Positions 875-45,879 are shown, counted from the stretch's first letter. The stretch: DNA of 64,000 bases from Kudoa neothunni (GCA_964304625.1 OZ199840.1:5445200-5509199), one strand, 5' to 3'. Numbers and translations: made by a program. Notes: generated from the sequence alone by a model not told the origin.

Positions 875-1725
875 ATGTCGATACATACAATTGTTTTCCT
901 TGGCTTCATTTGTTATATTCATAATTTGATACATAAATTTATTTTTATTAGGTGTCATAAAAATAGTACCTACTATAGAAGATGAGGTATCATGCTTTTC
1001 AAAATAATTTAATACACTTCAATAGTTTATTTTAATGAATAAAATGAGAGATCAGTTGATTCTAAGTTTGGTTGACCTAAGTAATAACAAATTATTTCAA
1101 AGTGATACAATTAAAGTATGCCTTTGGTTTCTTAAATGAAAATAAAATTATCCAGAATCTTATCATACAAGATGCTCTTGGCGATTTACCAGGATTCATT
1201 CATGAGTTTCCTATACTCACAGAACTTTGCGAGATATATGCTGTCTGTGAATACCCCTATAGTATGTTTTTTATTCACCCAATATCAATATAAATATATT
1301 CATAATTTTTTTTTTCGAATTCAAGTTCTCAAATTAAGAAATAAACCTGAATGCGTTCCATGTGTCGTAATTAATTTCTTCATGACAATGATATAGTTTT
1401 ATTATAGTTGGTTTTATATTTGTTTCATATGAGGGAACATATTAATCAACCTTTCACTGAATCAGTAAATATTTATAATATCCACGCAATCTATAAATCA
1501 ACATAATTTCCTTAATTCTCTTTCGCCACAGAAACAATATATGTTACTTCAAGTAACGAAATTATTATGCACTTTGGGGGATCACTGCACACCCTATCAG
1601 CATTATTTTCACTTACGTAATTAATCATTTTTACATATTTAAAGCTGTTATATTAATCGACTTATTATTTTACTTCATTTTTAGACTCAGTAACTTATAA
1701 CAAAGATCAGGGACCTCATTGCTAA
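875..1725 (+). CDS. Secreted Cys-patterned (saposin-like?) family protein, paralogue A, 8 exons
   Basis: Exons 875-911, 952-986, 1026-1115, 1156-1261, 1326-1366, 1408-1464, 1532-1616, 1685-1725, all GT-AG, splice to an open frame: MSIHTIVFLGFICVIKIVPTIEDEFILMNKMRDQLILSLVDLSNNKLFQSDTIKNLIIQDALGDLPGFIHEFPILTELCEIYAVCEYPYILKLRNKPECVPCVLVLYLFHMREHINQPFTESKQYMLLQVTKLLCTLGDHCTPYQHYFHLHSVTYNKDQGPHC*. Hydrophobic N-terminus; exon sizes and phases match the paralogues. Confidence 0.85.
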
Positions 1726-2779
1726 TTGGATAAATTCTCTAACCTTGATCGCTGTGGTGAATTTTACATCAGATTTTACTATATAAAATCAAATATAACT
1801 ATACCAATCTAATTCGATATGTGGTAAATTTAGATATTTTTTAAATTTTCAAATGAATATAATTTTTATCATGATAAGATGAATAATGATTAAGGAACAA
1901 CATAATTTTAAGTTCCATAAAAATAATTTTTTCGTTACATTCTTTCCATAATTAAAATTTAAATTTCATAATGCTTTGAAATGAATAAAGTATTTGTTTA
2001 CATAATTTTTTAAAGAGGTGGGTAAACTTTTTTAACTTGATTATTAAATAATGTTATTATTAGGTAAATTTATTTCCAATAATATAATTGATTTAATAAT
2101 AATTTTCATTTAAATTATCGTATAGTATCAATTTCATATTATTAGGTAACTATTTATTTTATATATTGTAATTAGAGAACTATCTATAAAATTTCTTTTT
2201 GCTCATCTTATATTTCGTAGTACATTTTTCTAAAACGTCCTATTAACGAATGAGTGATCTTAGTTCCTCAATGAAATAGATTTCAATAATGATAATGATA
2301 AAATAAACTTATAGTGGCAGTAGATAATCGATAGTACGAAATCCATTCAGAAACGCCAAAATAATTGGGTAGTAAATATTGCAATCAAGACGTCCAAATC
2401 TTGGTGTTTTCCTCTTGATGTTGAGATTCTTTTTCCAGTGTTTGGTTCTTAAGAGGTTTTTTCGCTTTAAGCCAAATCCAAATCCTGTGTGTTTTTTGTT
2501 TATTTTCAAAACATTTAGATTATTGAATTCTTTGTGACCAATATATAAATAAGAAGTTTTAGAATTAGGTAGAATAACCAAAGTTATTGTTTTAGTAACG
2601 GAAAGAATTAAAATTATTCGATATTTTAAAAAGATATCGCGGTCGTCGATATCGCGCTATATTCTAACTTCTGGATAATTTTTATTTAACGAATTGTTTT
2701 TATAATGAATTATTTTGATGTTATTGACGTAAATTATTTTATAGTATGAGTGAAATTTCAAACGGAGATCAAAATAGAG

Positions 2780-2950
2780 CGTGAAATAATGTGCCTCAAT
2801 CATGTTTGGCTAAATATTAACTTTAAATATTGACTTAACTAGGATGGTAAGGAGAGGAATTCCATCTAGTGCAAATGTTGAACGAATTTTTTTTAATGGG
2901 CACAATAAAAACTAACTAAACTATCTCATTAAAGGCTGAAATTATAAAAT
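2780..2950 (+). mobile_element. hAT dimerisation-domain remnant
   Basis: GIPSSANVERIFF at about 2856-2895, compare hAT PxSSxxxERxFS. Confidence 0.5.
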
Positions 2951-3619
2951 ATCAACATACCACAAAGCAGTTGATCAGATGAAATAATAATACGTGTTTG
3001 ACGTCACAACCAACAAATAAACTAATATATTACGTGAGCAGCGGTGTCGTGACCCAATGATACCTTGAGCGTTTGAAACATTGATCTAACTTCCTAGCTC
3101 AGGGTTGTGAAGACGATGAAAGCAATTCAATCGACGACAAAAATGAGAAAAACGCGTTTAAAATAAAATTTTATATTATTTTAATAATACTATTGTTTTT
3201 TATTTGCTATTTTGTTTTTTTTTTCGCCTAATCATTCGTATTTATAGAGTTCAATCTTGGGTTTATTCTGATAATCTCATTTGACGTCCTGGTTTCAACC
3301 ACTTGTAAGCAAACATTATTTGTGTTTTCTTTATTCTTCAACATGGTTAGACCCTCCTATTTTTAAATAAGAAAAACTAAAAATTTATTATTAAGTTTTA
3401 TTAAGGATATTTGGCCGAAAAATAATTTGTAAATTTAGTTTAAATCGAATTATTGATAAAATATTTATAAATCATTACATTGTATAAAATTCATTTAATA
3501 TGCAGTTCAATTAAATTGTAATTAATAATAGATTATTTATTTTTAGCGTCATGTGTAAAAAAGTTTTTATATCTGAATCTTATAATTTTTTAAACGCGGT
3601 GGCTAATCTCATGGTACCA

Positions 3620-5130
3620 AATAACTCCTCCGTTATAATTGAAATTTCAAATCTGATTATAAATTTAATTGTAGCCATTTTAAATCTAATTTTTTATGAA
3701 AAAACTGTTGGAAAATTGGATGAATAAAAATTCAACAGTTGGTCTGCCCTATTTACACAGTTCAATAAGTACACTCACATTTTTTGAGCCTAATATTATG
3801 TAATATAAATATTTTAATTAATATCAAATGTAAGCATTTCTAATGGTGGTTAGAAACCTTCATGTTAATAAACATTAACGCATGTAGTTTAATTTAGAAT
3901 ATGTCATCTCTAATCATTTACGAAACATGTACGTTTTTATCTAAACATTTTTAAATATAATTTTAACAAAACTGTTGTTATTTAATGGATATTAAATGGA
4001 GACGAATTATATTACAAATGTGTAAACCATTTTTCCTATGTATCTATAAGATTGTATTATAATTTCTGAGAATGTTCTTTTTTTGTCCCGACAATTCTAT
4101 TTATTTCAATCAGAAGTATGAGAAAGGTTTTCATGGTGCCTATTCGTGTATACAGTACATATGAGTTTAAATTTTAGAGTAAACCTACACTTCTTTATTT
4201 AAACCCATATATCTTTTTTTTCAAGCAAGGAGAATCTAAATTATCTGCATACATTCATCTAGTAGTGTCTCAGTGGGTAAATTTATAAAATGAAAATTTT
4301 TCAATGGTGATTTTTGTGGTACCTTTGCTTTGATTATTGTAAAACGAGCCAATGATGAAATATAAAATGGTAAATTCGTCCTTGAGCATTTTGAGTTGTA
4401 CAACCAAATTTCGTTTTAAAATTACAAACATTTGCTTCCTGACACAGAGGAATGTATAATTTTAATAGTTCAGAAAAATCGATTTTCACTCTAATGAAGA
4501 ATTGATCAACTTATACACACACTATCAATGGTTGTTTGGCTGGGGGCCCAAAAAATTACTCACAAATAACCACATACGAAATTTCAACAGTAAAATATTA
4601 TTTTTTATATAACATAGAGGTTTGAGAAAATCAATTTAAAAGCGCTTCATAGGAAGTTATAATGTCACCACTTTTCAGACTTATTCCATTCAATTGATAT
4701 TTTATATCTTACAAAAGCTTAAATTTCTCTGCTCCAATTGAATGTAACATATAAACATGTTAAACAACTTTAATTAGTTCAAAGTTCTTTATAACTTTGA
4801 AATAGTCTCACGAGATAGAACTCCCATAATCAAACAGGATTCATTCGCATATTCAGAGGGGGCGGGTGACACAAAAATACACAAACAGAACATTTTTTAA
4901 TTATTAGTGAATTTTTTGACTTTTTATTTCAACTAAAATGGTCATATTAAAGAATGTTAGGCTTAATAAATGTGAGTGTACTTATTGAACAGTGTAAATA
5001 GGGCAGAGAAACTGCTGAATTTTTATTCTTTAAATTTTCCAACAGTTATTTCATAAAATATTAGATTTAAAATGGCTACAATTAAATTTATAATCAGATT
5101 TGAAATTTCAATTATAACGGAGGTGTTATT
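3620..5130. repeat. ~175-bp long inverted repeats (3620-3797 / 4953-5130) bounding a 1.5-kb non-autonomous element
   Basis: CTCCGTTATAATTGAAATTTCAAATCTGATTATAAATTTAATTGTAGCCATTTTAAATCTAAT...AATAAGTACACTCACATTT is mirrored on the opposite strand with scattered mismatches. Confidence 0.85.
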
Positions 5131-5849
5131 CGATTCCATGAGAATAGTCACTGTCATTTTAAAATGATTCACCCAACTATATAATGTGAATACAGTGTAT
5201 ACTATAAAACGTCTAATGATGATTATTAGTGCGTTTTTAGACACATTTGGTATAATTTTTTATAATTTCGTACATTCCTTCAAAAATTCATTCGTAATAA
5301 TTTAAATTTTATTCTCTCTCCTCCAATACACAACAATAATATTCAAGTATGTTGGCTAAAAATAATTTATTATCAATAAGTCAAATTATATAATATATGG
5401 AAATTCCCTAGTTTATTCCAAAAATATTGTGAAGAATTTCACTCCGTTATAATCATAAAAATATTTCAACCTGTATCACTTATTATAAACATCGAACTCA
5501 TGGTATTCGTGTAATTGCATATTATGAGTTACGTAATGTATAATTTTTTTAAATTTTTTCTAGAATGATAGTCATAGCCACAATGACCACTCATCCAACC
5601 TCATGTAAGGTACCAATGTCATATTTGGTTACATTCTTATTTAGTAATTTTAGCGTTTGTGATATTCACAATATACAGTAGTGTATTGGTCGTACGCAAT
5701 ATGAATCCAACCCAATTTTAAAAAATTTACTTTTTAGTACTGATTTTATTTTGATTATAATTTGAATAGATGGTTCAATAAAAATAGATAATTTGTCAAT
5801 GAATAATTGATTTTCAACAAAATATTAGCGATGAAAATTTACTGTATGT

Positions 5850-6650
5850 TTCTAACGCAAAAATGCCTCGAGCGCAGTGCATAATCTGAACGTTGCAAAA
5901 AAAATGAATGGAACTATAATAATAGCGTAATAAATCACTTTGTATTGCCAAATAACACGAAATTTGAAAGTTTTATACTTTCATATCATTAATAAAGATT
6001 CTAAGCTCCAAGCGATGTAATAATTTCCCAATAAAACAGCACGATAACAAACAGGCCTAATGACCTGTTCCATTTTTGAGTCTTTTCTTAAAAAATAGAA
6101 TAGGCAACTGGCTCTTTCCAAGATAAAATTTTTTTATAATTTCGCAACTTTTTCTTAGCTCAAAAACAATATTTTTCTATCTTAACACTATGGTACATTT
6201 TTTCCAACACAACAAGTGGACTTCAACATGGGATCATAAAATTGTTAATGTTTTAAAATGACTCAAAAAGTAAATAAACGACATCATTCATTTATCAGAT
6301 AAAATTTCAAGATAGTAGCTACATTATAATTTATAAATAATATTTTGGATGTAATTGTTTTGGCATTCAAATTATGAGAATGCATTAAAACGGAATCCAT
6401 AGTTAACTGATTTAGGGAATCTTTTTCCTCTCTCAAAATCCACTAAATAATGATTCTTATGATGGTCTAGACGATGATCAGTTTAAACATGACATAATTT
6501 GGCTGATTGGATTGGAGGAATCATTAGAATCAACAAATTCTATGGAGGAAACTCTTGAGAACAACACAGTCGTCACCTCTGAAATTTTGACATCAGATTT
6601 TTCTTATCTTGACAGGGATGATGACGACTCTGATTATAGTGATAAGGATA
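5850..6650 (+). mobile_element. pogo/Tigger transposase remnant
   Basis: 6200-6245 reads NTTSGLQ-HGIIK, compare pogo NTTSxLQPxDxGII. No TIRs found; boundaries approximate. Confidence 0.5.
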
Positions 6651-8588
6651 TTATATCAACACGGAAGGAACTATTGTATTTGGCATGAGTTATAAAACTC
6701 TTTCTAAGTAAGATTTTGTCAATTCCTGACAATATAAACTGAACATGAAATGGTTGACTCAAGATTATAACAGTTTTATAGAGCAAAATACAGAACGGTA
6801 TTTTAATAAGGACAAGTATAAAAATTAATTTGTTCATCTAAATAAATTTTTATTGATTATATTATCGATAGAAATTGTTATTTTTGTCAATGCATGCGAC
6901 ATTCGAATATGGTCAATGCAAAAATGGATGCAACGCAATGGATATCATCTTTCAAATTTCTTTGTTACATCTATACATTACTGCAATCACACAACATATA
7001 GCTTTTAGTCCATCTGATATAAAGCAAGCATATACGGAAATATTTTATAAGCTTTAGTGAATATTTTTAATTTTTCCAAAATAATATTCATTAGTAGTCT
7101 GGCATAAATAATTATTGGTTGATCGAAATAGAGTAAAATTGTATTTATTGTAATTTTTATAAAAACTTTAATAATGCATTGATATACAATTATTTGTGGC
7201 AAACGTTACAATAAATAACATTTTAAATGAATTAATGTTAAAAAATAATATTATTTAATAAATTAAATATTAATTAATTAAATAACAACCAATTATTGAT
7301 TATTTAATAATATTGTTGCTTATGTAGCATTAATGGAGGTTAGATGTAATACGAGAAAACAATAATAAGCTTGCAATGAATGAAACAATAGATTACGAGT
7401 AAAATGGATTAGCCTGAATACAAAAAAGTTTTTCAAATTACATGGATAATTTATAATTATTTCAATTATATTTCATCTTTTTATAGGCCTTGGTTTTAAT
7501 AAAGAGGATGTTTTAAGTTATATAAATTGAAATAAATTTTATCGTACGTTTGGATTTTTTATGGAAAAAGGTATATTATTTAATAAAAACTCATTTTCTA
7601 AACACAATCTAATATATTTGAATCTATCATAATTATTTTTCAATAATAGACAACTATAATAAAATATTATATTAGCGATTATATGAAATTTACTTTATTA
7701 TTCAATTTATTAAAACATTTTAAAAAAGGTGGTTTATTATTTTTTGTGGTGAACATGCTATTTATTTAGTTGACAATATTATGGGGTAAACAATTTTTTA
7801 ATCGGTTAGGTTGTTGAATAGTACTTAATGATCTCTTCACAATTAATAAAGACAAATATTATTTAATGAAATAAATAAGGTAAAAATATTATTTTCACTT
7901 AAACCATTATTTGTAACCAACAAAAATTATCAATAAAGTATACAATACGTGATCAGATACGATGTTTAGAGAAATCAGAGTACAAACGTTAATCTTAATA
8001 AATAAATAATAATTCATTTATAACATGCCAATATATATTAATTCTTTGTGAAATATATATAATTTAAATTTCTTAACTTATATAGGTATAAACAATATCG
8101 ACGAAATCATTAAATAAAATAGTGGGAAATCAAATTTTTTAATCACGCAAAAAGATACAACATTTTTAACATTATTTTAACACACAAAAAACCAATGAAT
8201 TTTTATAAAAATATTCTGATATTAGATAACACGTATACAAAAGACTATAGTATCCAGTGTATTTTAGGAGGGTATTAATAAGATCTACTTACAGTTATAA
8301 GCGTAAATTCGTTTTATTACGAATTAGTAATAAAACGAATTTTTATCACTAATAATACTTATATGATAAAATTAATTTAATAATTTCCAACCATTCTATA
8401 ATACACATTATTGATTTTTTACAGTTTACACGTAATTATGTTCAATAATACTTTTTTTGTATTTTATTAAATTACTTAAATTTTTTAATATTTAAACGTA
8501 TTTGTTATCCGACTGATAGATTCATTGTATACAAGTGATATAACTTTATTGTTTTTAATTATTTTGATAACGATCATCGATAAAGTAG

Positions 8589-8596
8589 TATAAAAG
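8589..8596 (+). promoter_or_regulatory. Probable TATA box of paralogue B
   Basis: TATAAAAG 47 nt upstream of the ATG. Similar elements lie upstream of C (TATATAAAG, 17428) and D (TATATAA, 20080). The AT-rich background lowers specificity. Confidence 0.4.
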
Positions 8597-8635
8597 CACG
8601 CAGCATTGATTCAGCTAAATAGAATAAAGTTCTTC

Positions 8636-9658
8636 ATGAGTTTGTTGCAACCTTTCTGTTTTTTGTTGATAGGTTAGAATAATTATATTTTACATAAATA
8701 AATAATTTTAGTGTTTGTTTACTCGAAAAAAACTGTTCAGCACAGTGATGTAATATAATTTTTTTTGTTTTCTATCTTATTAGTTGATTTGTGTACATAT
8801 AGTTTGAAGTTTCGGAAACCGTAGCTCAGGAACTTACCCAGAGAATAAAAACATTTATGGGAAATCCAGCATTCAATGGCAAAGTTAAATTGAAATGAAT
8901 TTTTAATGTATCATTTTTAAATGATTACCTCAGGAACAATTGCTTATTAACGCGCAAAATAATCCGAAAGATTTTATTAATGAATTTCCTGATACTGATG
9001 GTTTCAGGAGAGATTACGCCGTGATTGAAGCAAACGAAGGTAATAGTTATTTATTCCCATCCATTTTTTATAATTATATGAACATATTTTATTACAGTTA
9101 AAGAAATAAGTGGAGATATAAATTGTTTCATTTGCTCTGTAGTGCACTTTTATTTTATAGATAGTTATAATTTTTATTAGAACTTATATTATGCTATTTT
9201 AAAAGACGGAACTAACGTAGAACAATCTTTCGACACTTCCGTAACTTTCTATATATATATATATATATATATACTTAAATTTTAAATATTTTATCGAAAA
9301 TTTAATAATTAATGTTGAATAGAAAGATATGGAAATTCTAAAAAACTCAAATAAAGGGTGTGTGAAGGATTTATTGTGCGATGTGTCAGTTCTTCCCTAT
9401 GCTGAAAGTATATGAAAATTTATTCAATACTATGTGTATCCTATAACTAATTACTAAATTTTGCTAATTATTTCATTTTCATCATCATAATGAAAATTTT
9501 AATAATGTTGTTATTTCGTATTAGGGGAAGAATTCAATGATGAAGGATGTGGTAATTTGCATTCACATAACAATGTACATTCATTGTTACGTAACGCTAT
9601 CCAACATGGCGAAGTACAAAAGATAGTCCTAGAACGTGATGAATTGCCTAGTAACTAA
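8636..9658 (+). CDS. Secreted Cys-patterned family protein, paralogue B, 8 exons
   Basis: Exons 8636-8672, 8712-8749, 8803-8883, 8934-9039, 9098-9138, 9181-9240, 9323-9407, 9525-9658: MSLLQPFCFLLIVFVYSKKTVQHSDFEVSETVAQELTQRIKTFMGNPAFNGKEQLLINAQNNPKDFINEFPDTDGFRRDYAVIEANEVKEISGDINCFICSNLYYAILKDGTNVEQSFDTSKDMEILKNSNKGCVKDLLCDVSVLPYAEREEFNDEGCGNLHSHNNVHSLLRNAIQHGEVQKIVLERDELPSN*. It has the same 106/41/60/85-nt core exons. Confidence 0.85.
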
Positions 9659-11559
9659 TACCAAACTAACAAAAATTATCAATTAGTGAATTCTCTATAT
9701 TTGAAGTTTCATTTTATTTTTTTATCTCAATCTATTTAAATATACCTATGTATATATATTTATTCAGAACGAACCAATATCATGAGTTATTACATATGAG
9801 TATTTTAATATTTTAAGTCATTAAGAATCAGCATATAGAATTCAATTCTATATAAATATAAAAATTATATGCTGAAAGTGAGTGTTTATGTAACGGTCAC
9901 TGCTATTCAAATTATAATTTAAAAATTAATGCAATAATTAAAATTATATTGATCAAAATATTAGAAAAAAATTATAAAATTAACTCGGAAAATTATATTT
10001 ACTATATAATATAATCATTTTAATTTAATATCTAATACATATATTAAAATTTATATAATTCTAAACAATAAACGTTCATTTATTACGAGAAATAATTCAA
10101 TCCATGAATTAAAAAATATGTGGATTTTAAATAATTTATTAAATTATACTAAAGTATTATAAATATAATAATAACGCAAAATTTCTAGCTTCGCTATGAT
10201 TCGAAATTATTCTACATTGAATATGTTCTTAAATCTTTCAATAAAATTTAGTAATGCATCAAAATTAATAGAATGGATAAAAATATGATCTATCTAGGCC
10301 ATAAATACATAATAAACGGGATGGGTGAAATATAAATTAAGATACTTGGATGAATTTATTTAAAATAATAAATTGTATATATTTATATTAAATAATTTGA
10401 GAATAAATTTGTAGAGGCTTAGATTATTTTTCTTCTTTTTTTATGGGGGTATAAATTTTTATATTGACATTCATAAAAACAACTTTTTTCAACTTATATA
10501 ATTAAAATATTTAGTTAAAGCACTAATAATTAGTACTTATTTCACTTTATTTATGTTGTTACATAAAAGAGGACATTGTTAAATAAATATAAAATGTATC
10601 CTAAAACTTTAGCTATAGTAAAATTAATAGGAACTATAATCCTAGAGAAAATAATAAAAATACCCAAGTAATGTCAAAAATTTATCAGAGATTAAATTCG
10701 ATTAAACATTCCGTGATGGACTTGCAAATTTTGGGATGTGAAACTTTTTACTGGGTTTTTATTTAAAAAAAATTTGTTATATTATTCATTCTCGCCTTTT
10801 TTTGAGAAGTAAATAACATTCATAGATTAACATTGTGCTCTGTTTGGATATATTTAAGAATTCTCTTATCAATAATTAATATACATTTTTCTCAATAATA
10901 AAACTACTTTTTCACTTGATGATCCTGTTTTTATAATCCATTTGCATCCGCGACCATCATTCAACGTACGTGAAAGTAGACACACGGTTTTTTGCTTATT
11001 CAGAAGTCGGTGAGTGAATCGAAATGCATTTGGAGCACTCGGAGTAAGATCATCATAGTTGTCACTGTTATTGTATTTCATATTTTAAAATTACTCGGGA
11101 TTCGGGACTTGCTACTAGCTGGTCCCGAAATTTGCAAGTATATTCCGGGCGCTTTGGGTTCTATTATACTCCAAAACTATTGTGAAAAGATTTTTTTGTA
11201 TTTTTTGAACTAAGCACTATTTATATCACTTGTTTTTTCCTAAAATATACACATGAATATTATAATCATTTATTTTATAAAATGATTACATTTTTAAGGG
11301 AAATAAATATACTTTTTACACATTGTACTTTTTGGGGTTTATTAGACACCCCTTTTTTATGTGCCCAAACAACAACAAAAATTTTTCTATTTAACATTTT
11401 AAAATAAAAACAGAATCTACCGTAAATATTAAGAGAAAATGAGTAAACAAATATCGACGATGTTCCGTGGTAATACCGAACAGGTCGTTGGATATACTAG
11501 CGCCTCGAATGATATAAGTTACAAAAATTACGATAGTGATTTTAACAGATTCATTAATA

Positions 11560-12060
11560 TATTAATAGAGTAACAATATGTCAAAAACTTTTTAATTTTA
11601 TGATAATGATGTCGACATTCATATTATATACTCGGAAAAAATGGCGTAATGTGATATATTGAAATCATAAGAACATCAAAAGTGTGAACAGAAAATATTA
11701 TGGACGATGCCCTAGGTGTTAGCGCTTATTTAGCTCATAGAATTAAGGAATTTTTGGAATGCTCAGATATATTGCTCTGTGATGGCGTTTATGAATACTT
11801 AATATGAAATACAAATAAATCTGGTTTACATCATTACGTTCATCGTTTGAAACAATTTTTCAATAAATAAGTTTTGGTTATACATAGGTGTACTTATTGA
11901 TATGACAATAACGAGATCTAGACTGGAGTTTATAAAAACATTTTGGAGTAATGATATAGGTATGGAAATACTTCGAGTGGTCATGAATTTGAGAAGTTTG
12001 ATTGAGATTACGAAGACTTTCCCATTTGAATATTATACAATCACAATCGAAAAAAACAAA
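11560..12060 (+). mobile_element. Mutator (MULE) transposase remnant
   Basis: LECSDILLCDGVYE (compare MULE DGTF) and VVMNL...IEITKTFP (compare DFE...FP). Confidence 0.5.
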
Positions 12061-12199
12061 CTGATGACTTTTGCCAGTATCGGGAGAAATTCGACAAATG
12101 AAAACAACTTCTTCCTAGTTACCTAATACCTTATTTATATTTAACAGTTGATTGCTTATAGAAGGAAATATCATTCCACACTATACATGCCTTACGAAC

Positions 12200-12760
12200 C
12201 GGCAGTTTAACAATTGAAATTTTTCTTGCATGTACACTCAGCTAACTTTAATCACAACATTTCTGTCTTCCTTCGTAAACAAATTAACCAAAAAGCTTAT
12301 TGTTTAGGATAATATTGTTTTATATCTTGTGCCATACCTAAAAACAGTAATAGAAATATTGTTGCTGATAATTATTTGAACATTAATTTTATTTTTCAAT
12401 TAATTATTAAGAACTAGTCTGACTATGGTTGGAACAATTAAGCCAACAAGGAGATACATACGAAATAATGAAGCTGAGCCAATCAAGGAAGCTTTATAGT
12501 TAATTATTTCCTTTCTCCGATATAATTATTGTGTTCCATGTCTCTAAAAAAACATGTCAGTTATACTCTTGGTTTTTTCTTCAGTAAATACGAACTTATC
12601 TCCTGATGAATACAAAAAACTTGAAGTCATTTCATTTTCCAATAAAAACAGACGTGGCTTTGATACTGTCGGTCACATTATAGTTTCCACTAATGTCAAA
12701 AGGTATTTTAACTGCTAGCCAACCGTGTTTTTAATATTTTAGGCATTAACCTGATAAATT
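12200..12760 (+). mobile_element. piggyBac transposase remnant
   Basis: RNIVADNY (about 12352-12378), MVGTI, and NKNRRGFDTV, compare the piggyBac YNxxKGGVDxxD motif. Confidence 0.6.
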
Positions 12761-27200: not shown

Positions 27201-27582
27201 ATACTAAATACTCAGAATCAGTAAATCTATATGTATCCATAAAGTTAGGTTATAATCGTTTATTATTTTGTATGAAATTCTATCAGATATTTATACATGA
27301 TAATATTGACCAGATTGATGACAACACGTGTAACAACAAGATGTATTAGGTAAAGATGTACCGGTAACTTATCAAAATGTTTTGAAATATTAAAACGAAT
27401 AGAAATAATCTTTCAAATATTACAAAAAAGATCGATCAACTATTCGTAACCTCGTTGGGAACAAGGTACATTCAATTTGAGTTAAAAAATATCTCCTATA
27501 AAATATAAAATCATTCCAATTTAAAAATTAAATATTTAAGGGGTAAATAGATAAAAAATGCACCCAACTTCAGGAACGCTAT

Positions 27583-27655
27583 GGTTCATTATCTAAGTGG
27601 CAAGGTGCCGCAACTTTTAGCTTGATGGTCAGGGGTTCAATCCTTTCCATTTTAT
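27583..27655 (+). pseudogene. Degenerate tRNA-like sequence (tRNA-Lys(TTT)-derived pseudogene or SINE head)
   Basis: A-box-like TATCTAAGTGG, anticodon-loop-like CTTTTAG and B-box GGTTCAATCC, followed by a T run. The acceptor and anticodon stems pair poorly. Confidence 0.4.
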
Positions 27656-29244
27656 ATTTTCGTTTAAGTTATATGCAAATTAACTTCAAAAAATTGTAAA
27701 TAATCCAATGTTAGTTACCAATGCGCATGTGCAGAATAATTGTAAAAATGGGATCCTTATATACTGTCTAAAATAGTTATTTTCATCTTTTAAGTTCTAA
27801 AAGTTAACTTTTCTTAAATTCTTCAATACCGCTTTTATATTCGTAAAGTAATTTTATGATATTTTTACTTTTTTAAAAAAGTTTAAAATTTTTTTAATAG
27901 AAAAATAGAAAATGACTATAATTTTTTAAGAGGTAAAGTTTTCAACGAAAGTAGTATAGCGAATAATTAAAAGCTGAGACTATTAATGAGGTGAATTTTG
28001 ATCTCAAAGGCATGCTTCCTTTCGCTATGATAATAAGATAATAATTATTACTATCAAATCGTATTCGCAGGTAGATATAGATGTAATTTTTTAGAATCTT
28101 CTAAAATAACCTATTTCTAGATCCCAATATTGATCTTGGGTGTTATAAATAATTAAATCTAGTTATAACTTATAACTAGTGATACCTGAATATAATTTTG
28201 TAATATAATTTGATATTAGCCTAAAATTATAAACATTGGTATTTTTATTCCGTTTGTTGCGATTAGGATAAAATGCCGATTTACATATTTACGATTCAAA
28301 TTTCTACATTTTATCACGCCATGAAAATTAATAGTTAATAAAATATGTGATACTTAATTATTGTCACCCATAAATAAGCAACGTAATGATGTATTATTAA
28401 CGTTTAGCATCATTGTTAACAACATAGTTGTAGACGAAAATTGAAATAAAATCGCATTATATAATTTTAAAAATTCTATAACTCGTAAATTTACATATAT
28501 CACCACCTAAAAATGTAATGAAAAATAATTAAATGGCATTTAAATATAATAGTTAAATTCTCATTTATTTAATATTTCTTTAAATCATGGGCATTTTTTT
28601 GACAATAGAACCGTTTAATGGTATAATAATTGTAAACTATGCATTTATAATATCCGAAAGTGACTCCTCATTTCCAATATTATCTGAAATTTCAACTGCT
28701 AAGAATAAAATTATTTTTAAGTTCGCTTATTTGCGATTAATCCGCTTTAATTGGTTAATTAATTTTTTCTCTCGTAATTGTTTCAAATATTTTAGCAAAT
28801 ATATTGTTTACTTTATTTAATTTATAACCTTACACAAAAGATGTTACTAATCAACGATATTAATTGCTGAAAAAATTATAGAAAAATATTTGATCATGAA
28901 GCTGATAGTAGCAGCGCGGTTAAAATCTCATATATTTAATGCACGCTAATGTGTTTAATTCACTTCATACAGTTAACTTGGTCACGCACTCAGTGATAAT
29001 AGATTTGAATGCGACCATTCATTTCAATGATACCACGTTTTTGGGGGTTAAAATGACAGCCTTAAGATAGAATATAATAAAAATCTTTTTTATATTTTCT
29101 TCTTGTTTGAAAATAAACTAAGAAAGTTCAGCACATGAATTATAAAACATTTTTTAAATAAGCCAATTTATTTAAGAAAAATCAGATTAATCCTAATATT
29201 TAAGAAATTAAATTTTGTCGCCAAACGAACTTTAATATCAAGGA

Positions 29245-30314
29245 ATGGCCTCTCAAACTAACGCTAAACTGTTACATATTATTGCAAGTAACATTAAAAA
29301 GGCTGCATCAGCTAAGAGGTTTGTCTAGTCGTATGTGGAGTTATTGCAGGTGCCACCAGTTTTGGCGACACAGACACAGATGCTCCACCTATCCAACTTA
29401 GTGATCAAGCCAGAAGTTTGTTAGTTAAGGAATTGCTACTTCAGATGAACCAAACTGCCAATACTGGAATAGTTAACGAAGTTATTACATAAAAATGTTC
29501 AGGGTTTGGCTAATTATTATTTAGATCTATAATAGAATAGTACCTGATCAAAAATATGAAGAACTATTGCCTAAAATATTGGATTATAAACTTATCCGCA
29601 AACATTTGGGTAATTGTAGTGAAAATCGTGAAGGTATAAAGTTACATTTATAATTTATCTTAATTTGTTTCAGTACTCAATTTTCTTGACAAATACAAAA
29701 GATGTATTCCATGTCTTGTAAGTTGTTTCGATCGAATATATCGTCGATATATCTTTAGATCAGAGGCCACTCCGCCAATTTCTACTTGAGGGAACACATT
29801 CTGAGTAATAAATATTCGAAAATATTCAGCCACCCTGTAATTTAACATAACTATAATATTCATAATTCTTTCACACATATTACCTCAGTACAAAGTTGCA
29901 CCAAGTACCTACTACCAAGTATGCTCAAAGCACATGCCGAAAGCATTCTGTGTAATTCAGAAATTTTGTCCATATGAGTAAAAATCATACTGTTAAATTA
30001 AATAAACGAAAAAAATTATAATCAGGGTTCTGACTCGAATGGATAAGATATTCTTTATTCTCATGGACACACCTCCCCGCATGTAAATTAATATACCATT
30101 TTACTTATGTAAATATATAAAGGTATGAGGATGCAGAAAATCGCTTTGGTAAAGTGAATTTTTTGAATTTTTATTAATTTTTTTAGAAACTTATGATAAA
30201 ATAAATGAAATGCTAAAACCATATTACGCAGGCATATGGTTTAATTCCTTTGGTTCTTTCACCTCTAGTGACCTAATTTCCTTATTACAAAGAAATCACA
30301 TAATATTGGTCTAA
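29245..30314 (+). CDS. Divergent member (F) of the secreted Cys-patterned family, about 9 exons
   Basis: Exons 29245-29287, 29329-29480, 29525-29633, 29674-29717, 29759-29836, 29889-29977, 30026-30082, 30123-30148, 30187-30314: MASQTNAKLLHIIAIVCGVIAGATSFGDTDTDAPPIQLSDQARSLLVKELLLQMNQTANTGIVNEIYNRIVPDQKYEELLPKILDYKLIRKHLGNCSENREVLNFLDKYKRCIPCLIRGHSANFYLREHILSNKYSKIFSHPYKVAPSTYYQVCSKHMPKAFCVIQKFCPYEVLTRMDKIFFILMDTPPRMYEDAENRFETYDKINEMLKPYYAG... It retains the CIPC exon and C-x5-C-PY. The last exon and stop are uncertain. Confidence 0.7.
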
Positions 30315-41300: not shown

Positions 41301-42399
41301 GGATGAATACAGAAATTAAATAAAATTCAATTCATGATGTAACCATGTGCATTAAAACAATAAAAATATATATTGTTTACACATACGTATATTCCAAAAA
41401 GTGCATTATTCAGCATTTTTTTTATTTTGGAATTACTACCCACAAAATAAAATTGTAAAAGGTCAAAATTTGTAGTTTCGTTTTTTTCCTAACATTCATA
41501 AAATTAATCAACATAAAAACAGTTTATGATATAATTTTTAAAAAAAAATTGCACTAATTTGTTAGGAAAAATACATATATTTTTTTTATGTTTGAAAAAA
41601 CACCCCAAAAATATTTATAAACTAAAAAAAATGTTTATACTTAGAAAAATATTTTATAAACAATATTTACTTAAATATGACTACTAAAACAGGCATTTTT
41701 CTACATAATATACGAAAATTTTAAAATATGGCTTATGATAGTTCATTTAAGTGTTGAACTAATCAAAAAAATTACACTAGAACATTAAAAATAATTAAAT
41801 ACGATTGTGAGAAAAATAAACAAAACTTCGAAGTAAGAACGAACGAACATAATGGAGATAACACGTGCTCCAAATCTCTTTTTGTTACAATCTATCAATT
41901 TAGAAGTGACCTTTGTGGTGCTACTTTAGAATCCATAATTTCTAGATTTAAAAAATAAATATGAAAAAAAGAAAAATTTGATCAGTGAAGATGTTCGTTA
42001 GATGCCACAATCTTCATCATTACACTGTCAATTAGAGAATAAAATTCCCCAATCTTGTAAGATTTTCATGCTTTTGTGTAATATTTAACGATAGACAATT
42101 AGTTAGATTTAAATTAATATTTAATGATACGAAAAATTTATTACCTAAATCTCGTTAGCTGAATATTGTCACGCACAATTAAACAAACGATAAACAATTC
42201 CCATAATAAAATCCCAAATAGCTAATGAAGTTATCATTGTCAATAAAATAATAAATAGATTGTGAACTAACTTTTGATAATTTGTACACCTCCTTAAATC
42301 GTAAGTGAGGTAACCGATTCATGAAGAATAAAATATTTAATGTAAACATATTTTCAAATGAAGGATAAACACTAATTCTATCCCTTCCTGTTTTTAATC

Positions 42400-44263
42400 C
42401 TAAAGTTTCTTTCAGTATGGCAAGCCACCAAAAAGTTAGGAAATTGAAGGAAAAATACCCCAAATACGGTTTACTAAAAAACTCGTCAATGGTGTTGAAA
42501 AACCACAATGCTTTGTTTGTAATGTCGTTTATCCAAATTCCATCTTGAAGCCATTGAAGTTGCTTCAACGTTTTGAGAACAAACATGGTGGTAAAACACA
42601 TATAGGAAAGGATATCCAGACATTAAAAGTGAAAAGAGCGCGCTATGATTTAAGAGGAACATTTCCCTAAATAAATCCTTGCTTCTCGCTCCATTCAAAA
42701 TAGTTTTTGAAGTGGCAAAAGCAAAATAAACCCCACAATATTGCAGAGGCGTTGATAAAACCATGCATTTTGGGGGCAGAAAAGATTGTTTTGGATGAAG
42801 AAACAGCACATAAACTCGAAGGAATACCACTATCCAGCAATGTTATCCGCAATAAAATTGACAAGATAAGTGCTGATATTCACGATCAAATAATTTCGGA
42901 TATTAAAGCATCTCTAATGCATATTTCACTCTAGCTGGATGAGTTAACGGATATCGATAATTGTAGTCAGCTCATCGCTTTCGTAAGATATGTGAAATCG
43001 ACTTTTATTGAGGAATACTTTTTATTTTACAAGGCGTTGAATACTACAACAACAACTACAGTGGATATTTCGAAATATTTAAAAATTTTTTGACGCTAAC
43101 GGAATTTTAATCACAACTATTGGATCTATTTGTACCGATGGTGCACCCATCACGTTAGGAAATAAATCGGGGTTTGTTACTCATATAAAATGTCATGTTC
43201 CGAACGTGATAATCATCCATTCTATTTTGCATCGCCAAGCTCTGATGTCAAAAACTTTGCCGATTAGTCTAAAATCAACAATGGATTATTGTATCAAAAT
43301 AATAAATTTCATACGCGGAAGAGCTTTAAATCACAGACTTTTTAAAGCATTTTGCAATGAAATTAACGAAGAAGCTCCTGTTCTTATCTACCACACAGAA
43401 ATAAGGTGCTTGTCTCGAGGACGCGTTTGAAGTCAAAAAACCGACTTAAAACACGAAATCGAGAAATTTTTATTGGATCAAAAATCGGATCTTGCTAATG
43501 TTTTCAAGTTCCATAATTTCTCAATAATGATACCATATCTCACTGATACCTTTCAACACTTGAACGAATTAAATTATTCGTTTCAAGGGAAAAATATAAA
43601 TATTATAATCGCGTCTGACAAGTTACGAGCTTTTCGCGAAAATCTAATTTTATGGATTGTCAGAATAATAAGTAAAAATGTGAATTCCGAAATTTTGCAA
43701 ATTGAAATAAAACGTCATTTGGAAAAATTGAAAGATTCTTTTAATGGCTATTTTTCTACTGGCAACTTAAATGAAATTGTTGTTTGAGTCAAGTTTACTT
43801 GAGCACTTCTGGTGTCACGCACTAAATAGTTATCCCAGTTTAGCGAAAAAAGCGCTGAAGATTTTAATTCCATTTGCCATTACGTGGTTATGTGAATGGG
43901 AGTTGTCCTCCCTTAATACATAAAAAACAAGTATAGAAACACGTTAAAACCAGAAAATGACTTACAAATAGCATTAACCAACAAAAGTCCTCGTTTCGAT
44001 GTTTAATTGCCAATAAAAAACAAAAAAAAGTTCATAATGTATCTAAAATTTTTTAACTGTTAATTTTACAATTGTATTTTTTCGCATTAAATGGTTAAAA
44101 ATGTATATTCGTGCAATTGTCTACGAATGTATCGCGGTTAAAAGAAATATGTGGGCGTTAATCTTATATAATCCGAATTTCGACTAGCCTTAAATATAGG
44201 GGTGTGGAAATTGCCGATACAATTGCAGGAGATGTCAAACCCAAAACGAATAGGGAAACCCTG
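42400..44263 (+). mobile_element. hAT (Buster/ZBED5/SCAND3-like) transposon remnant
   Basis: Fragments KPHNIAEALIKP, IPLSSNVI, TDGAP, HSILHRQAL, YHTEIRCLSRGRV and a dimerisation-domain remnant (LIPFAITWLCE). Right terminus TAGGGAAACCCTG ends at 44263; left end not located. Confidence 0.85.
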
Positions 44264-45879
44264 CTCTAAAAAGGTTCTAATCGCCTATGCAGAAGAGCTC
44301 TTGATTTTATCACATTAACAGCAGACTCTACAGGGTCCAAAATATGCTTGAATTTCAGTGAAAATTTATATAAGCTTTCCTGGTGTATAATACAATGAAA
44401 TGAAAAAATTTTGTGTGAGAAGAAATCTTCATTGATTTTATCATTCATCAGTAGTGACACTGGTGGGTTTGTCCAAGCTTAAACCAGAATTGTTCCAATT
44501 ATTTGTAACGCTATCAAAAAAATGTTGTCCAGTTGTGGTATTCTTCAAGGATTTAAGTGATAGGAGCTCCTCGGTAATTTCGAAATTATGGTCAATTCCT
44601 TTTACAAAAATGAGTAATTGGGCGATATCGGTAGCATCCGCACTTTCGTCCAAAGCAATAGAATAATACTCAAAGTTAGTAATTTTTTCAAACAAAATTT
44701 CTTGTGAATTTCGAAAAATGTTTTCAAATCGTCGAACAATTGTTCTTTGTGACAGACGAATAGCTTCAATTTTCGAGATGACTTCAGGGCATACATCATT
44801 AACAGCATCCATAAAACATTCATTAATAAACTTCCCATCCGTGAATGTTTTGTTATGTTTTAAAAATTTGCGGGAAAGTATAAAGCTAGTCATCCTTTCA
44901 TCTCATTTTATGGATGTTGCTTTTCCAAATGAATTTTTATGGCGGCGTTTTAAATTTTGTTCCGTATCAGATGTCTACTTTTTTAGTTCCTCCTGTGACT
45001 AATGTCATCCAAAATTGGAATGTTTGGTTTTATAGTGGCGTTTCATGTTGTATTCTTTGTACACAGCGATTGTGTTACGGCAAATCAAACATACAGTCTT
45101 ATTATTGATATTGTTAAAAAAAATAATTTTCAGTTCACTCGTGATTGAACCTAGTCATTTCAACAAATTTTTTATACTAAAGAAAGTTTTGGCAAAAATA
45201 TAAATGGGGTAACCGTTGTTTATAATATCGTCTTTCGGTATATTTTTCAACTTTTTTTGATAGCAGTATGTTTTGTAGATTTACATCATTTAATTATGGT
45301 AAAAAAATTTATCCCTGTGTATACAAAAGCTAAATTAATTTTAATATAAAAACGCTCATCCATCAGTAGATCCATGAATACCGGTTAAACGAAGTCTACA
45401 TTACGATGTTAAAAGTTCGAAGAGAATTATTTATGGTGAGCTTATTAATATCGCAATTACTTAGTTCTTGAGGACAAATATGGAGATATTTCCTAATTTT
45501 TATGATTGATGTTATCTATTAGATATTTGAGATCATTTTTAATACGCATAGTCCTCTTTTTCGATGACCCCTTTATAGCTCGAACGTAAAAGTTAATATT
45601 TAGAAATTAAATTATGATATAAAGTTATTTCTTATTTTTTTAATTATACTTGTTGTTAGAATGATTATTGGTAACAATATTAAAATTTTAATACTTAATT
45701 CACTTGGGCATGACGTTTGTGATGAATTATTTTAAACTGCTAAATACAATGCACATCAAAGTTCTTTAAACTAAAATAAGCATTTTAATTATGAAAATTA
45801 GGTATTTAAATTTATTAGAAACAAAAAGTTTTTGCGACCGGTGTTGGAGTCTCTCGCGGGCTGTGGTTTGCCCACCCTG
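44264..45879 (-). mobile_element. hAT (GTF2IRD2/SPIN-like) transposon remnant, truncated at the adjacent Buster-like element
   Basis: ORFs 44441-44893 (FTDGKFINEC, LSQRTIVRR, YSIALDESAD, SVTTD) and 44266-44460 (FHCIIHQESL). Terminus CAGGGTGGGCAAACCACAGCCCGCG on the minus strand at 45879. Confidence 0.85.

Follow-up and report, generated by a model that had tools for sequence, protein, structure and literature searches.

Six plus-strand genes in a 64,000-nucleotide stretch (hereafter the window) of the genome of Kudoa neothunni, which parasitizes tuna muscle, are the right-hand end of a larger family of this species, which comprises at least about 50 genes. Judged from sequence, this appears to be a real, undescribed and lineage-restricted family of predicted secreted proteins. 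Its members are built from short exons of strongly conserved size and phase, and the exon-chain pattern exceeds chance.

Six genes in the window

Four genes, A–D, were modeled by a constrained exon-chain search. Gene A (875..1725, + strand; eight exons at 875-911, 952-986, 1026-1115, 1156-1261, 1326-1366, 1408-1464, 1532-1616 and 1685-1725) encodes 163 amino acids and matched the exon-4 profile with E = 1.9e-13. Its introns were 39-68 nt long and GT-AG throughout, and its product had a signal-peptide-like N-terminus and the framework C-x5-C-x13-C-x2-C-x32-C-x5-C. Gene B (8636..9658, + strand; eight exons at 8636-8672, 8712-8749, 8803-8883, 8934-9039, 9098-9138, 9181-9240, 9323-9407 and 9525-9658; 193 amino acids) formed a long branch in the family tree; it was without the first C-x5-C pair and had the C-terminal amphipathic motif. 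The full six-cysteine framework was found in gene C (17479..18380, + strand; eight exons at 17479-17512, 17552-17589, 17658-17750, 17791-17896, 17949-17989, 18029-18088, 18143-18218 and 18298-18380; 176 amino acids). The full framework was also found in gene D (20116..21056, + strand; eight exons at 20116-20146, 20185-20222, 20294-20383, 20423-20528, 20575-20615, 20660-20719, 20809-20893 and 20962-21056; 181 amino acids), which had a tail rich in His, Asp and Asn and whose sequence was spanned by DNA contigs of run X1 with 0 differences. Genes C and D were sisters in the tree (support 97/97) and shared 40% identity.

All introns of A–D were GT-AG and 38-117 nt long, the open reading frames encoded 163-193 amino acids, the phases were 1,0,0,1,0,0,1, and the core exons measured 106 (exon 4), 41 (exon 5), 57-60 and 76-85 nt. 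The spacing C-x5-C-x13-C-x2-C-x32/33-C-x5-C was present in A, C and D, and the lack of the first pair in B had been allowed for in the earlier note. Pairwise protein identity among the window genes was 15-40%, in agreement with the strong divergence that had been claimed.

The remaining two genes departed in part from the earlier account. Gene E (23402..24290, + strand) had the A–D-type eight-exon layout and the framework, with homology-consistent exons at 23402-23441, 23482-23513, 23570-23659, 23699-23804, 23852-23892, 23932-23991, 24056-24140 and 24208-24290. The sole GT..AG choice for its third intron was 23660-23697, which left a surplus T at 23698; thus, with canonical splicing the reading frame of gene E breaks between exons 3 and 4, and an X was placed in the translation only at this break. 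For the surplus base, a frameshift, an indel in the assembly and an unusual acceptor are all conceivable. Gene F (29245..29980, + strand) appeared to be a divergent relative with weak support and an ambiguous 3' end (candidate stops at 29980, 30046 and 30314). Its exons lay at 29245-29287, 29350-29480, 29525-29633, 29674-29717, 29759-29836 and 29889-29951 or onwards. Its layout differed, with exons 2 and 3 fused (131 nt) and core exons of 109, 44 and 78 nt, sizes other than those of the family as defined below. The cysteine framework also deviated: the first pair was reduced to one Cys, and the last motif was C-x8-C-x5-C, ~47 residues past CxxC. The family HMM scored 12.8 bits on gene F and at most 7.2 in 200 shuffles, and a genome search with an exon-4 profile built without F did not recover it. 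In three RNA runs labeled with the host species, 0 reads fell on 19900-24400, a result that says nothing about expression.

Size, age and integrity of the family

The exon-4 profile was searched against the 40.3-Mb K. neothunni genome, which was assembled from yellowfin tuna data, and gave 52 matches at E<1e-3. The window genes are grouped, as the earlier note held, and the expansion that it proposed extends far beyond six genes. Most matches fell in a pair of opposed blocks on contig 3 (5.05-5.17 and 5.32-5.47 Mb), and the rest formed smaller groups on contigs 1, 2 and 3. Gene models were drawn from 43 exon-4 anchors, on DNA that included roughly half of the two contig-3 blocks. Complete eight-exon models were obtained for 33, and exon 4 measured 106 nt and exon 5 41 nt in all of them. 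A chain of exons 5-7 with CxxC and Cx5C was found downstream of 34 out of 40 real exon-4 anchors and of 0 out of 400 anchors with shuffled downstream sequence. GC content was 32.8% in exons and 19.1% in introns. The median intron of 46 nt agreed with the median that has been published for K. neothunni, 49 nt (PMC12239612), which supports the reality of the genes. A typical member was an eight-exon gene of ~0.85-1.0 kb that encodes 155-197 amino acids.

As a working definition, the family was taken to have eight exons with phases 1,0,0,1,0,0,1, an exon 4 of 106 nt ending in C-x5-C, an exon 5 of 41 nt in which C-x-P-C follows after exactly 13 residues, and an exon 7 with C-x5-C. All of these features were found in 27 models besides A, C and D; the first pair was absent from B and two others, and gene E departed from the definition by its 1-nt frame defect.

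The family appeared to be old, as had been proposed. Pairwise identity among the 33 models had a median of 21% and a maximum of 51%, synonymous sites were saturated (dS >= 0.9), and no copy-to-copy nucleotide similarity could be found among the genes. Transposon-borne copies were considered and ruled out, since the genes share no nucleotide similarity and repeats lay only between genes. The crude dN/dS among paralogues was 0.17-0.55, and neither recent duplicates nor a sign of positive selection was found among family members; the lack of recent duplicates and the crude dN/dS point to long-maintained paralogues and not to fast arms-race turnover.

Two observations would suit an array that is mostly a decaying remnant, that is, a pseudogene field or exon-like patterns no longer expressed: the frame defect in gene E, and the 10 out of 43 exon-4 anchors for which no complete model was obtained under the rules used. 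We consider such decay highly improbable. Part of the incomplete models was due to locus edges or model size limits, and the survival of 33 complete eight-exon reading frames at ~21% identity and saturated dS is incompatible with neutrality. The strong GC contrast between exons and introns and the homologue of the same architecture in another organism (see below) also argue against decay.

Cysteine scaffold and resemblance to known proteins

The earlier note had assigned a signal-peptide-like N-terminus to all six genes. A hydrophobic N-terminal core of this kind was found in 30 of the 33 models by a hydropathy heuristic (a 10-residue window with mean Kyte-Doolittle >= 1.8 in the first 30 residues), whereas gene F had weak N-terminal hydrophobicity. 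The next ~75 residues showed helix-like periodicity, a crude hydrophobic hint, and contained the motifs L-S..A...L, LF and II..A..D...F.N.YP. They were followed by the cysteine core, C-x5-C-x13-C-x-P-C ... C-x5-C, and by a highly variable polar tail; many members ended with an alternating-hydrophobic motif, K-I/L-x-x-I/L-T-L/I-E-F. The full C-x5-C-x13-C-x2-C...C-x5-C framework was present in 30 of 33 models, and the x13 spacer was invariant in all 30, which is consistent with the fixed disulfide scaffold that had been predicted. The family alignment showed neither a further long hydrophobic segment nor a hydrophobic C-terminus, and KDEL-like ends were absent. One clade had an extra, symmetric Cys pair (+8 and -8) in an all-or-none manner, with both residues present in 13 members, both absent from 21 and no mixed case. 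On the family tree this was a single change; thus, the co-occurrence is statistically weak evidence for pairing. An internal duplication of exons 2-4 as exons 5-7, which share the same phases, was not supported, as hhalign aligned only 13 columns around C-x5-C (P = 0.22).

The family seems to be absent from public protein collections. When the exon-4 profile (35 positions) was searched against 1.84 billion proteins, the only true match was P0001, a 35-residue ORF fragment on a metagenome scaffold whose protein cluster was a singleton; the other match, P0002, was a false, low-complexity one. A homologue with exon sizes of 37, 44, 87, 106, 41 and 51 was identified on scaffold L051 of an ENA metagenome, from another organism; it showed at most 31% identity in full-length alignments and was nested within the eight-Cys clade. 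No consistent or significant match was obtained in Pfam with the exon 4 and exon 7 sets, in PDB profile searches with exons 3, 4 and 7, or in a protein homology search with the open-frame-extended exon 4, although exon-level queries are short (28-35 positions) and weak for remote known folds. ESM Atlas features scored < 0.8, with no consistent match, and PF11938 (Canopy / DUF3456 saposin-like ER proteins) gave 0 matches in the genome at E<=10. These results agree with the proposal of a lineage-specific family.

Saposins pair their cysteines in the order C1-C6, C2-C5, C3-C4, and the pattern used for comparison is C-x2-C ... C ... C ... C-x5-C over ~80 residues in a four- or five-helix fold. It might be supposed that the C-terminal half of the family proteins is a shortened SAPLIP lipid-binding module, divergently expanded for lipid uptake or membrane attack. 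Both groups are small secreted proteins (predicted for the family), the N-proximal C-x2-C and the C-terminal C-x5-C of the family probably hold antiparallel helices together, the nested middle pair added in the eight-Cys clade mirrors the saposin order, and helix-like periodicity near the Cys motifs and the reliance of myxozoans on host lipids also suit this reading. However, we regard it as quite improbable. The saposin-type order was found only in the eight-Cys clade (13 of 34 members), compressed into ~40-57 residues; most members, including all six window genes, are without the middle pair, and the window genes have only the outer four Cys of this order. The family module is about half the saposin length, its CxxC-to-Cx5C spacer being 26-41 residues vs about 60 in saposins, and the preceding extra C-x5-C and ~75-residue N-terminal region have no saposin counterpart. 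Exon-level PDB and Pfam searches gave no saposin match. In six-frame searches of the whole genome at E<=10, PF05184 (SapB_1) and PF03489 (SapB_2) matched two unrelated places each and 0 of the >50 family loci, a test that is weak because introns split the candidate module over exons 5-7.

A likeness to OS-D chemosensory proteins was also considered, as both are small, soluble, secreted and helical binding proteins (predicted on the family side), and the OS-D sub-pattern C-x6-C-x18-C-x2-C resembles the family C-x5-C-x13-C-x2-C. However, the Cys spacings are unlike those of OS-D, and OS-D proteins are not known outside arthropods. PF03392 (OS-D) gave 0 matches in the genome at E<=10, which is weakly informative, since control genomes also gave 0.

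With respect to organization, the family resembles the VSP-like genes reported in Sphaerospora molnari (preprint 10.64898/2026.02.11.705288) and the Kunitz expansion of the K. neothunni genome: all are parasite gene families in tandem arrays that encode signal-peptide proteins on a fixed Cys scaffold, and annotation based on homology misses them or leaves them without a name. VSPs are CXXC-rich, membrane-anchored proteins of 300-700 amino acids (preprint 10.64898/2026.02.11.705288), whereas the Kudoa proteins have ~180 residues, are predicted to be soluble and show no Pfam match and no recent duplicates; the Kunitz expansion of the same genome, unlike the Kudoa family, has strong PF00014 matches. 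The Kudoa family also differs from many arms-race effector families, in being without recent duplicates and without a sign of positive selection.

Possible roles at the host interface

We infer a host-interface role for the family, for which 'effector' would be a hypothetical label. The best explanation, towards which we lean modestly, is a secreted, disulfide-braced family that has diversified as a binding repertoire at the parasite-host interface. The signal peptide would take the proteins into the ER, three or four disulfides would brace the core, and CxxC and Cx5C would staple an antiparallel hairpin. As the proteins show neither a TM segment nor a GPI-like tail or a KDEL-like end, they would be released in soluble form outside the cell. 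They may be used in the fish muscle fibre or in an invertebrate host, with purifying selection keeping each paralogue for a ligand of its own. Against such a use, the plasmodia of Kudoa reside within muscle fibres, and the reducing cytosol of the host is poorly suited to disulfide-dependent proteins; this favors a luminal, spore or extracellular-stage role. As one concrete option, a saposin-like module may bind or scavenge host lipid. According to a preprint (10.64898/2026.02.11.705288), most myxozoans depend on lipids of the host, which provides a rationale for lipid binding.

The poor fit to host cytosol could also be met by a luminal compartment of the parasite. The proteins might be spore structural parts or secretory-organelle cargo (polar capsule or tubule, valve or sporoplasm granule) and not host-directed at all; they would be made through the ER-Golgi route, and either disulfide exchange or the C-terminal amphipathic strand would serve to polymerise them. 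As a rule, the capsule proteins of cnidarians are small and Cys-rich and take the secretory route; the conserved C-terminal alternating-hydrophobic motif of many members could be a donor strand, and long purifying selection without recent turnover suits structural parts. However, >50 paralogues at ~21% identity far exceed the diversity that known capsule-wall families need, the tails are highly variable, and motifs of collagens, of minicollagen-type Cys-rich domains and of lectins are absent. Thus, we consider spore cargo, including its assembly by either route, unlikely.

A more far-reaching proposal is tentative and, in our opinion, rather doubtful: the proteins may represent a new fold or domain, in which a disulfide-stapled helical hairpin is combined with an N-domain of helices and with a donor-like strand at the C-terminus. 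It would have been born in the Kudoa/multivalvulid lineage before the species split, would now be among the largest secreted repertoires of these parasites and would work where the parasite meets host muscle, capturing ligands or lipids, for example, or modulating the host response. If this were true, the family would be a source of species-specific antigens and markers, and a core that is either a mini-saposin or a new fold would be of interest for protein evolution.

To our knowledge, almost nothing is known about the Kudoa-host interaction. Post-mortem 'jelly meat' in tuna and other marine fish is a form of spoilage due to Kudoa species, some of which are linked to food poisoning. Kudoa has been placed among foodborne pathogens in a review. 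The family members would be candidates for factors of host interaction, for antigens of diagnostic use and for species markers. The annotation of K. neothunni relied solely on protein hints from other species, and almost no parasite RNA reads were available in the genome paper (PMC12239612). With such hints only, families like this one may be left unannotated, and the present family appears to be so in K. neothunni; a secreted family of 50-plus members may noticeably enlarge the set of 5,316 predicted proteins. In genomes with tiny introns, orphan families can be revealed by the conservation of exon phase and exon size.

Gene models in the window

Kudoa neothunni possesses a real, large, ancient and lineage-restricted gene family, which is characterized by a rigid exon architecture, a cysteine scaffold and signal-peptide-like N-termini. 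In the window, exon chains for six plus-strand genes (A-F, starting at positions 875, 8636, 17479, 20116, 23402 and 29245) were enumerated by a depth-first search of all GT..AG combinations from the six proposed start codons; the filter required the proposed phases, exons of 106 and 41 nt and the CxxC...Cx5C pattern. Gene A, examined by eye and then by script, has eight exons and an ORF of 163 codons, and its introns, 39-68 nt long, are all of the GT-AG type; the published median intron of K. neothunni is 49 nt (PMC12239612). After filtering of the constrained exon chains, a single best model was left for each of A, B, C and D, with exactly the exon sizes that had been claimed for them in the earlier note. 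Pairwise identity among A-E was 15-40%.

The earlier observation was largely right, the exceptions being E, whose reading frame is defective, and the divergent F. The eight-exon layout proposed for gene E was recovered and aligned well to the other genes, whereas its frame was not intact: the sole canonical choice for intron 3 is 23660-23697, and a surplus T at 23698, which separates the acceptor of this intron from the point where exon 4 would start in frame, puts that exon out of frame under canonical splicing. The extra base may reflect a frameshift, an indel in the assembly or an acceptor of non-canonical type, and the E protein was read with an X at the exon 3/4 break. Gene F scored 12.8 bits against a family HMM built without it (at most 7.2 bits in 200 shuffles), with an alignment in register across the N-domain and CxPC, but its layout differs from that of A-E: a single fused exon replaces exons 2 and 3, the core exons measure 109, 44 and 78 nt, a single Cys of the first pair is kept and the last motif is C-x8-C-x5-C. 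Its N-terminus is weakly hydrophobic, its 3' end allows several models, and a genome search with an exon-4 profile made without F did not detect it. Gene F is probably a distant, weakly supported relative.

GC content ranges from 22 to 32% across the window, which contains nearly no long ORFs; those present are transposon remnants. The remnant of a piggyBac-type transposase gene lies at 55068-56278, where two overlapping plus-strand ORFs each have a hit to Pfam DDE_Tnp_1_7 (E = 2e-28 and 5e-12), indicating that the gene is frameshifted; neighbouring ORFs at 42182-44893 had no Pfam match. No Rfam match was found in the window. Interspersed repeats common to other parts of the array were observed at 3319-5866, 10771-11091, 13203-13342, 15069-15437 and 26371-26697, as well as at 22300-23200; in the DNA run, contig depth was high and heterogeneous over 22.3-23.2 kb. 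Three RNA runs labelled with the host species contained no read from 19900-24400, which says nothing either way about the genes.

Size, layout and exon architecture of the family

The genome searched comprised 40,260,978 bases in 4 contigs. The assembly has been described as 40.2 Mb, with three chromosomes and the mitochondrion, obtained from yellowfin tuna data, and its annotation was built from protein hints alone because parasite RNA reads were almost nil (PMC12239612). An exon-4 profile made from the six window genes identified 46 places in the genome, and a profile made from 22 verified sequences identified 52 at E<1e-3. Two main blocks with 17 exon-4 matches each are located on contig 3, one on the minus strand (5.049-5.167 Mb) and one on the plus strand (5.316-5.469 Mb); they are oriented away from each other, with approximately 150 kb between them in which the profile search found no family match. 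In the window, which spans 5,445,200-5,509,199 of contig 3, A-E are the final five members of the plus-strand block, with F next after them. Small clusters at 9.20-9.23 Mb of contig 3, 2.956-2.994 Mb of contig 1 and 11.29-11.38 Mb of contig 2, together with singletons, account for the remaining matches. The tandem cluster reported previously is real, being one end of a block, but its count of six members fell about tenfold short of the scale of the family.

With exon 4 as the anchor, a rule-based search that covered part of the family DNA gave 33 complete eight-exon ORFs from 43 anchors. Exons 4 and 5 were 106 and 41 nt, respectively, in all 33 models, and with a single exception exon 3 measured 81-93 nt. 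Exon 6 was mostly 57-60 nt and exon 7 mostly 85 nt in the plus-strand block, in contrast with mostly 39 nt and 97-109 nt, respectively, in the minus-strand block. A chain of exons 5-7 with both Cys motifs could be built for 34 of 40 real anchors and for none of 400 with shuffled downstream sequence. GC content was 32.8% in exons and 19.1% in introns.

Predicted proteins and comparison with known families

The modelled members are 155-197 aa long, and their N-terminal core is strongly hydrophobic in 30 of the 33 models. The first part contains the conserved motifs L-S..A...L, LF and II..A..D...F.N.YP with a helix-like hydrophobic periodicity. The Cys framework consists of C-x5-C, exactly 13 residues, C-x-P-C, a hydrophobic-aromatic stretch and, 26-41 residues on, a second C-x5-C. 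A polar tail follows, which varies greatly between members. In many of them, this variable polar linker leads to a conserved alternating-hydrophobic motif at the C-terminus, K-I/L-x-x-I/L-T-L/I-E-F, encoded in the last exon (for example, gene B at 9600-9658 and the loci L045, L044 and L021); it is absent from A, C and D, and looks like an amphipathic beta-strand. The alignment revealed no second long hydrophobic segment, hydrophobic C-terminus or KDEL-like end in any modelled member. From these sequences we infer soluble, secreted proteins that are braced by disulfides.

Thirteen members have two extra Cys, eight residues after CxxC and eight before Cx5C: all modelled genes of the minus-strand block (an 8-Cys subfamily whose exon 6 is mostly 39 nt), four scattered genes and a foreign homologue on a metagenome scaffold (L051). 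Both Cys were present in 13 and absent in 21 sequences, with no mixed case; on the maximum-likelihood tree the pair was a single change (support 90/84), so this co-occurrence is not an independent statistical proof of pairing. The symmetric placement is nevertheless what would be expected of an antiparallel hairpin held together by nested disulfides.

Outside comparisons were made exon by exon, and spliced proteins were compared among paralogues only. At the exon level, no match was obtained with Pfam, PDB sequence profiles, a word-indexed protein search or ESM Atlas features. A half-length saposin was also considered; the SapB_1 and SapB_2 models detected no family locus in the whole genome at E<=10, and the OS-D and DUF3456 models found nothing, although none of the four tests is strong, as the candidate module is interrupted by introns. 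On the basis of these negative tests the family was not classed as saposins. A saposin-like role in lipid handling, as a rival reading, seems unlikely. An organization into two tandem three-exon modules was unsupported (hhalign P = 0.22 over 13 columns). The literature on Kudoa and myxozoan genomes, as far as searchable, described no such family. As the earlier note had proposed, the family appears to be undescribed.

Age of the family and its possible role

When the exon-4 profile was compared with 1.84 billion representative proteins, only one true match was observed, a 35-aa ORF fragment (P0001; E = 5e-8); a second match was false and of low complexity. No full-length relative was found by this profile, which suggests that public collections of proteins, any deposited K. 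neothunni annotation among them, lack the family. P0001 derives from the 1,978-nt ENA metagenome scaffold mentioned above (ERZ28624939, scaffold_5105; GC 26%), which has no nucleotide similarity to K. neothunni. The homologue (L051:1265-1978) has exons of 37, 44, 87, 106, 41 and 51 nt with the same phases and the 8-Cys pattern; exons 1, 4 and 5 are identical in size to those of K. neothunni members, whereas full-length alignments showed at most 31% identity to any of them. It comes from another, AT-rich organism. In the tree it was nested within the 8-Cys clade, which, together with the shared exon sizes and phases, indicates that the intron positions and the split between 6-Cys and 8-Cys members arose before the two organisms diverged.

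Median pairwise identity among the 33 models was 21% (51% for the closest pair), and the closest pairs had Nei-Gojobori dS values of 0.9 or saturated and crude dN/dS values of 0.17-0.55. The previous view of an old, lineage-specific family diversified on a fixed Cys scaffold was supported. The window genes had no nucleotide-level similarity to any other locus compared, and the repeats of the array are confined to intergenic stretches between family genes; recent or transposon-borne copies were rejected on these grounds. The members are old paralogues that were long kept intact. Such long-lived paralogues without recent duplication argue against a fast-turnover arms-race family and are compatible with functional specialization. 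Most likely, the family would supply a diversified set of binding proteins at the interface between parasite and host; a structural role in the spore or polar capsule seems rather unlikely.

In addition, Kunitz/BPTI domains were hugely expanded genome-wide in K. neothunni, with 950 first-look candidates, 150 of which were scored and had at least 49 bits each. Approximately 25 near-identical domains lie in one array on contig 1 (for example, C1:14,950,483-14,956,649).
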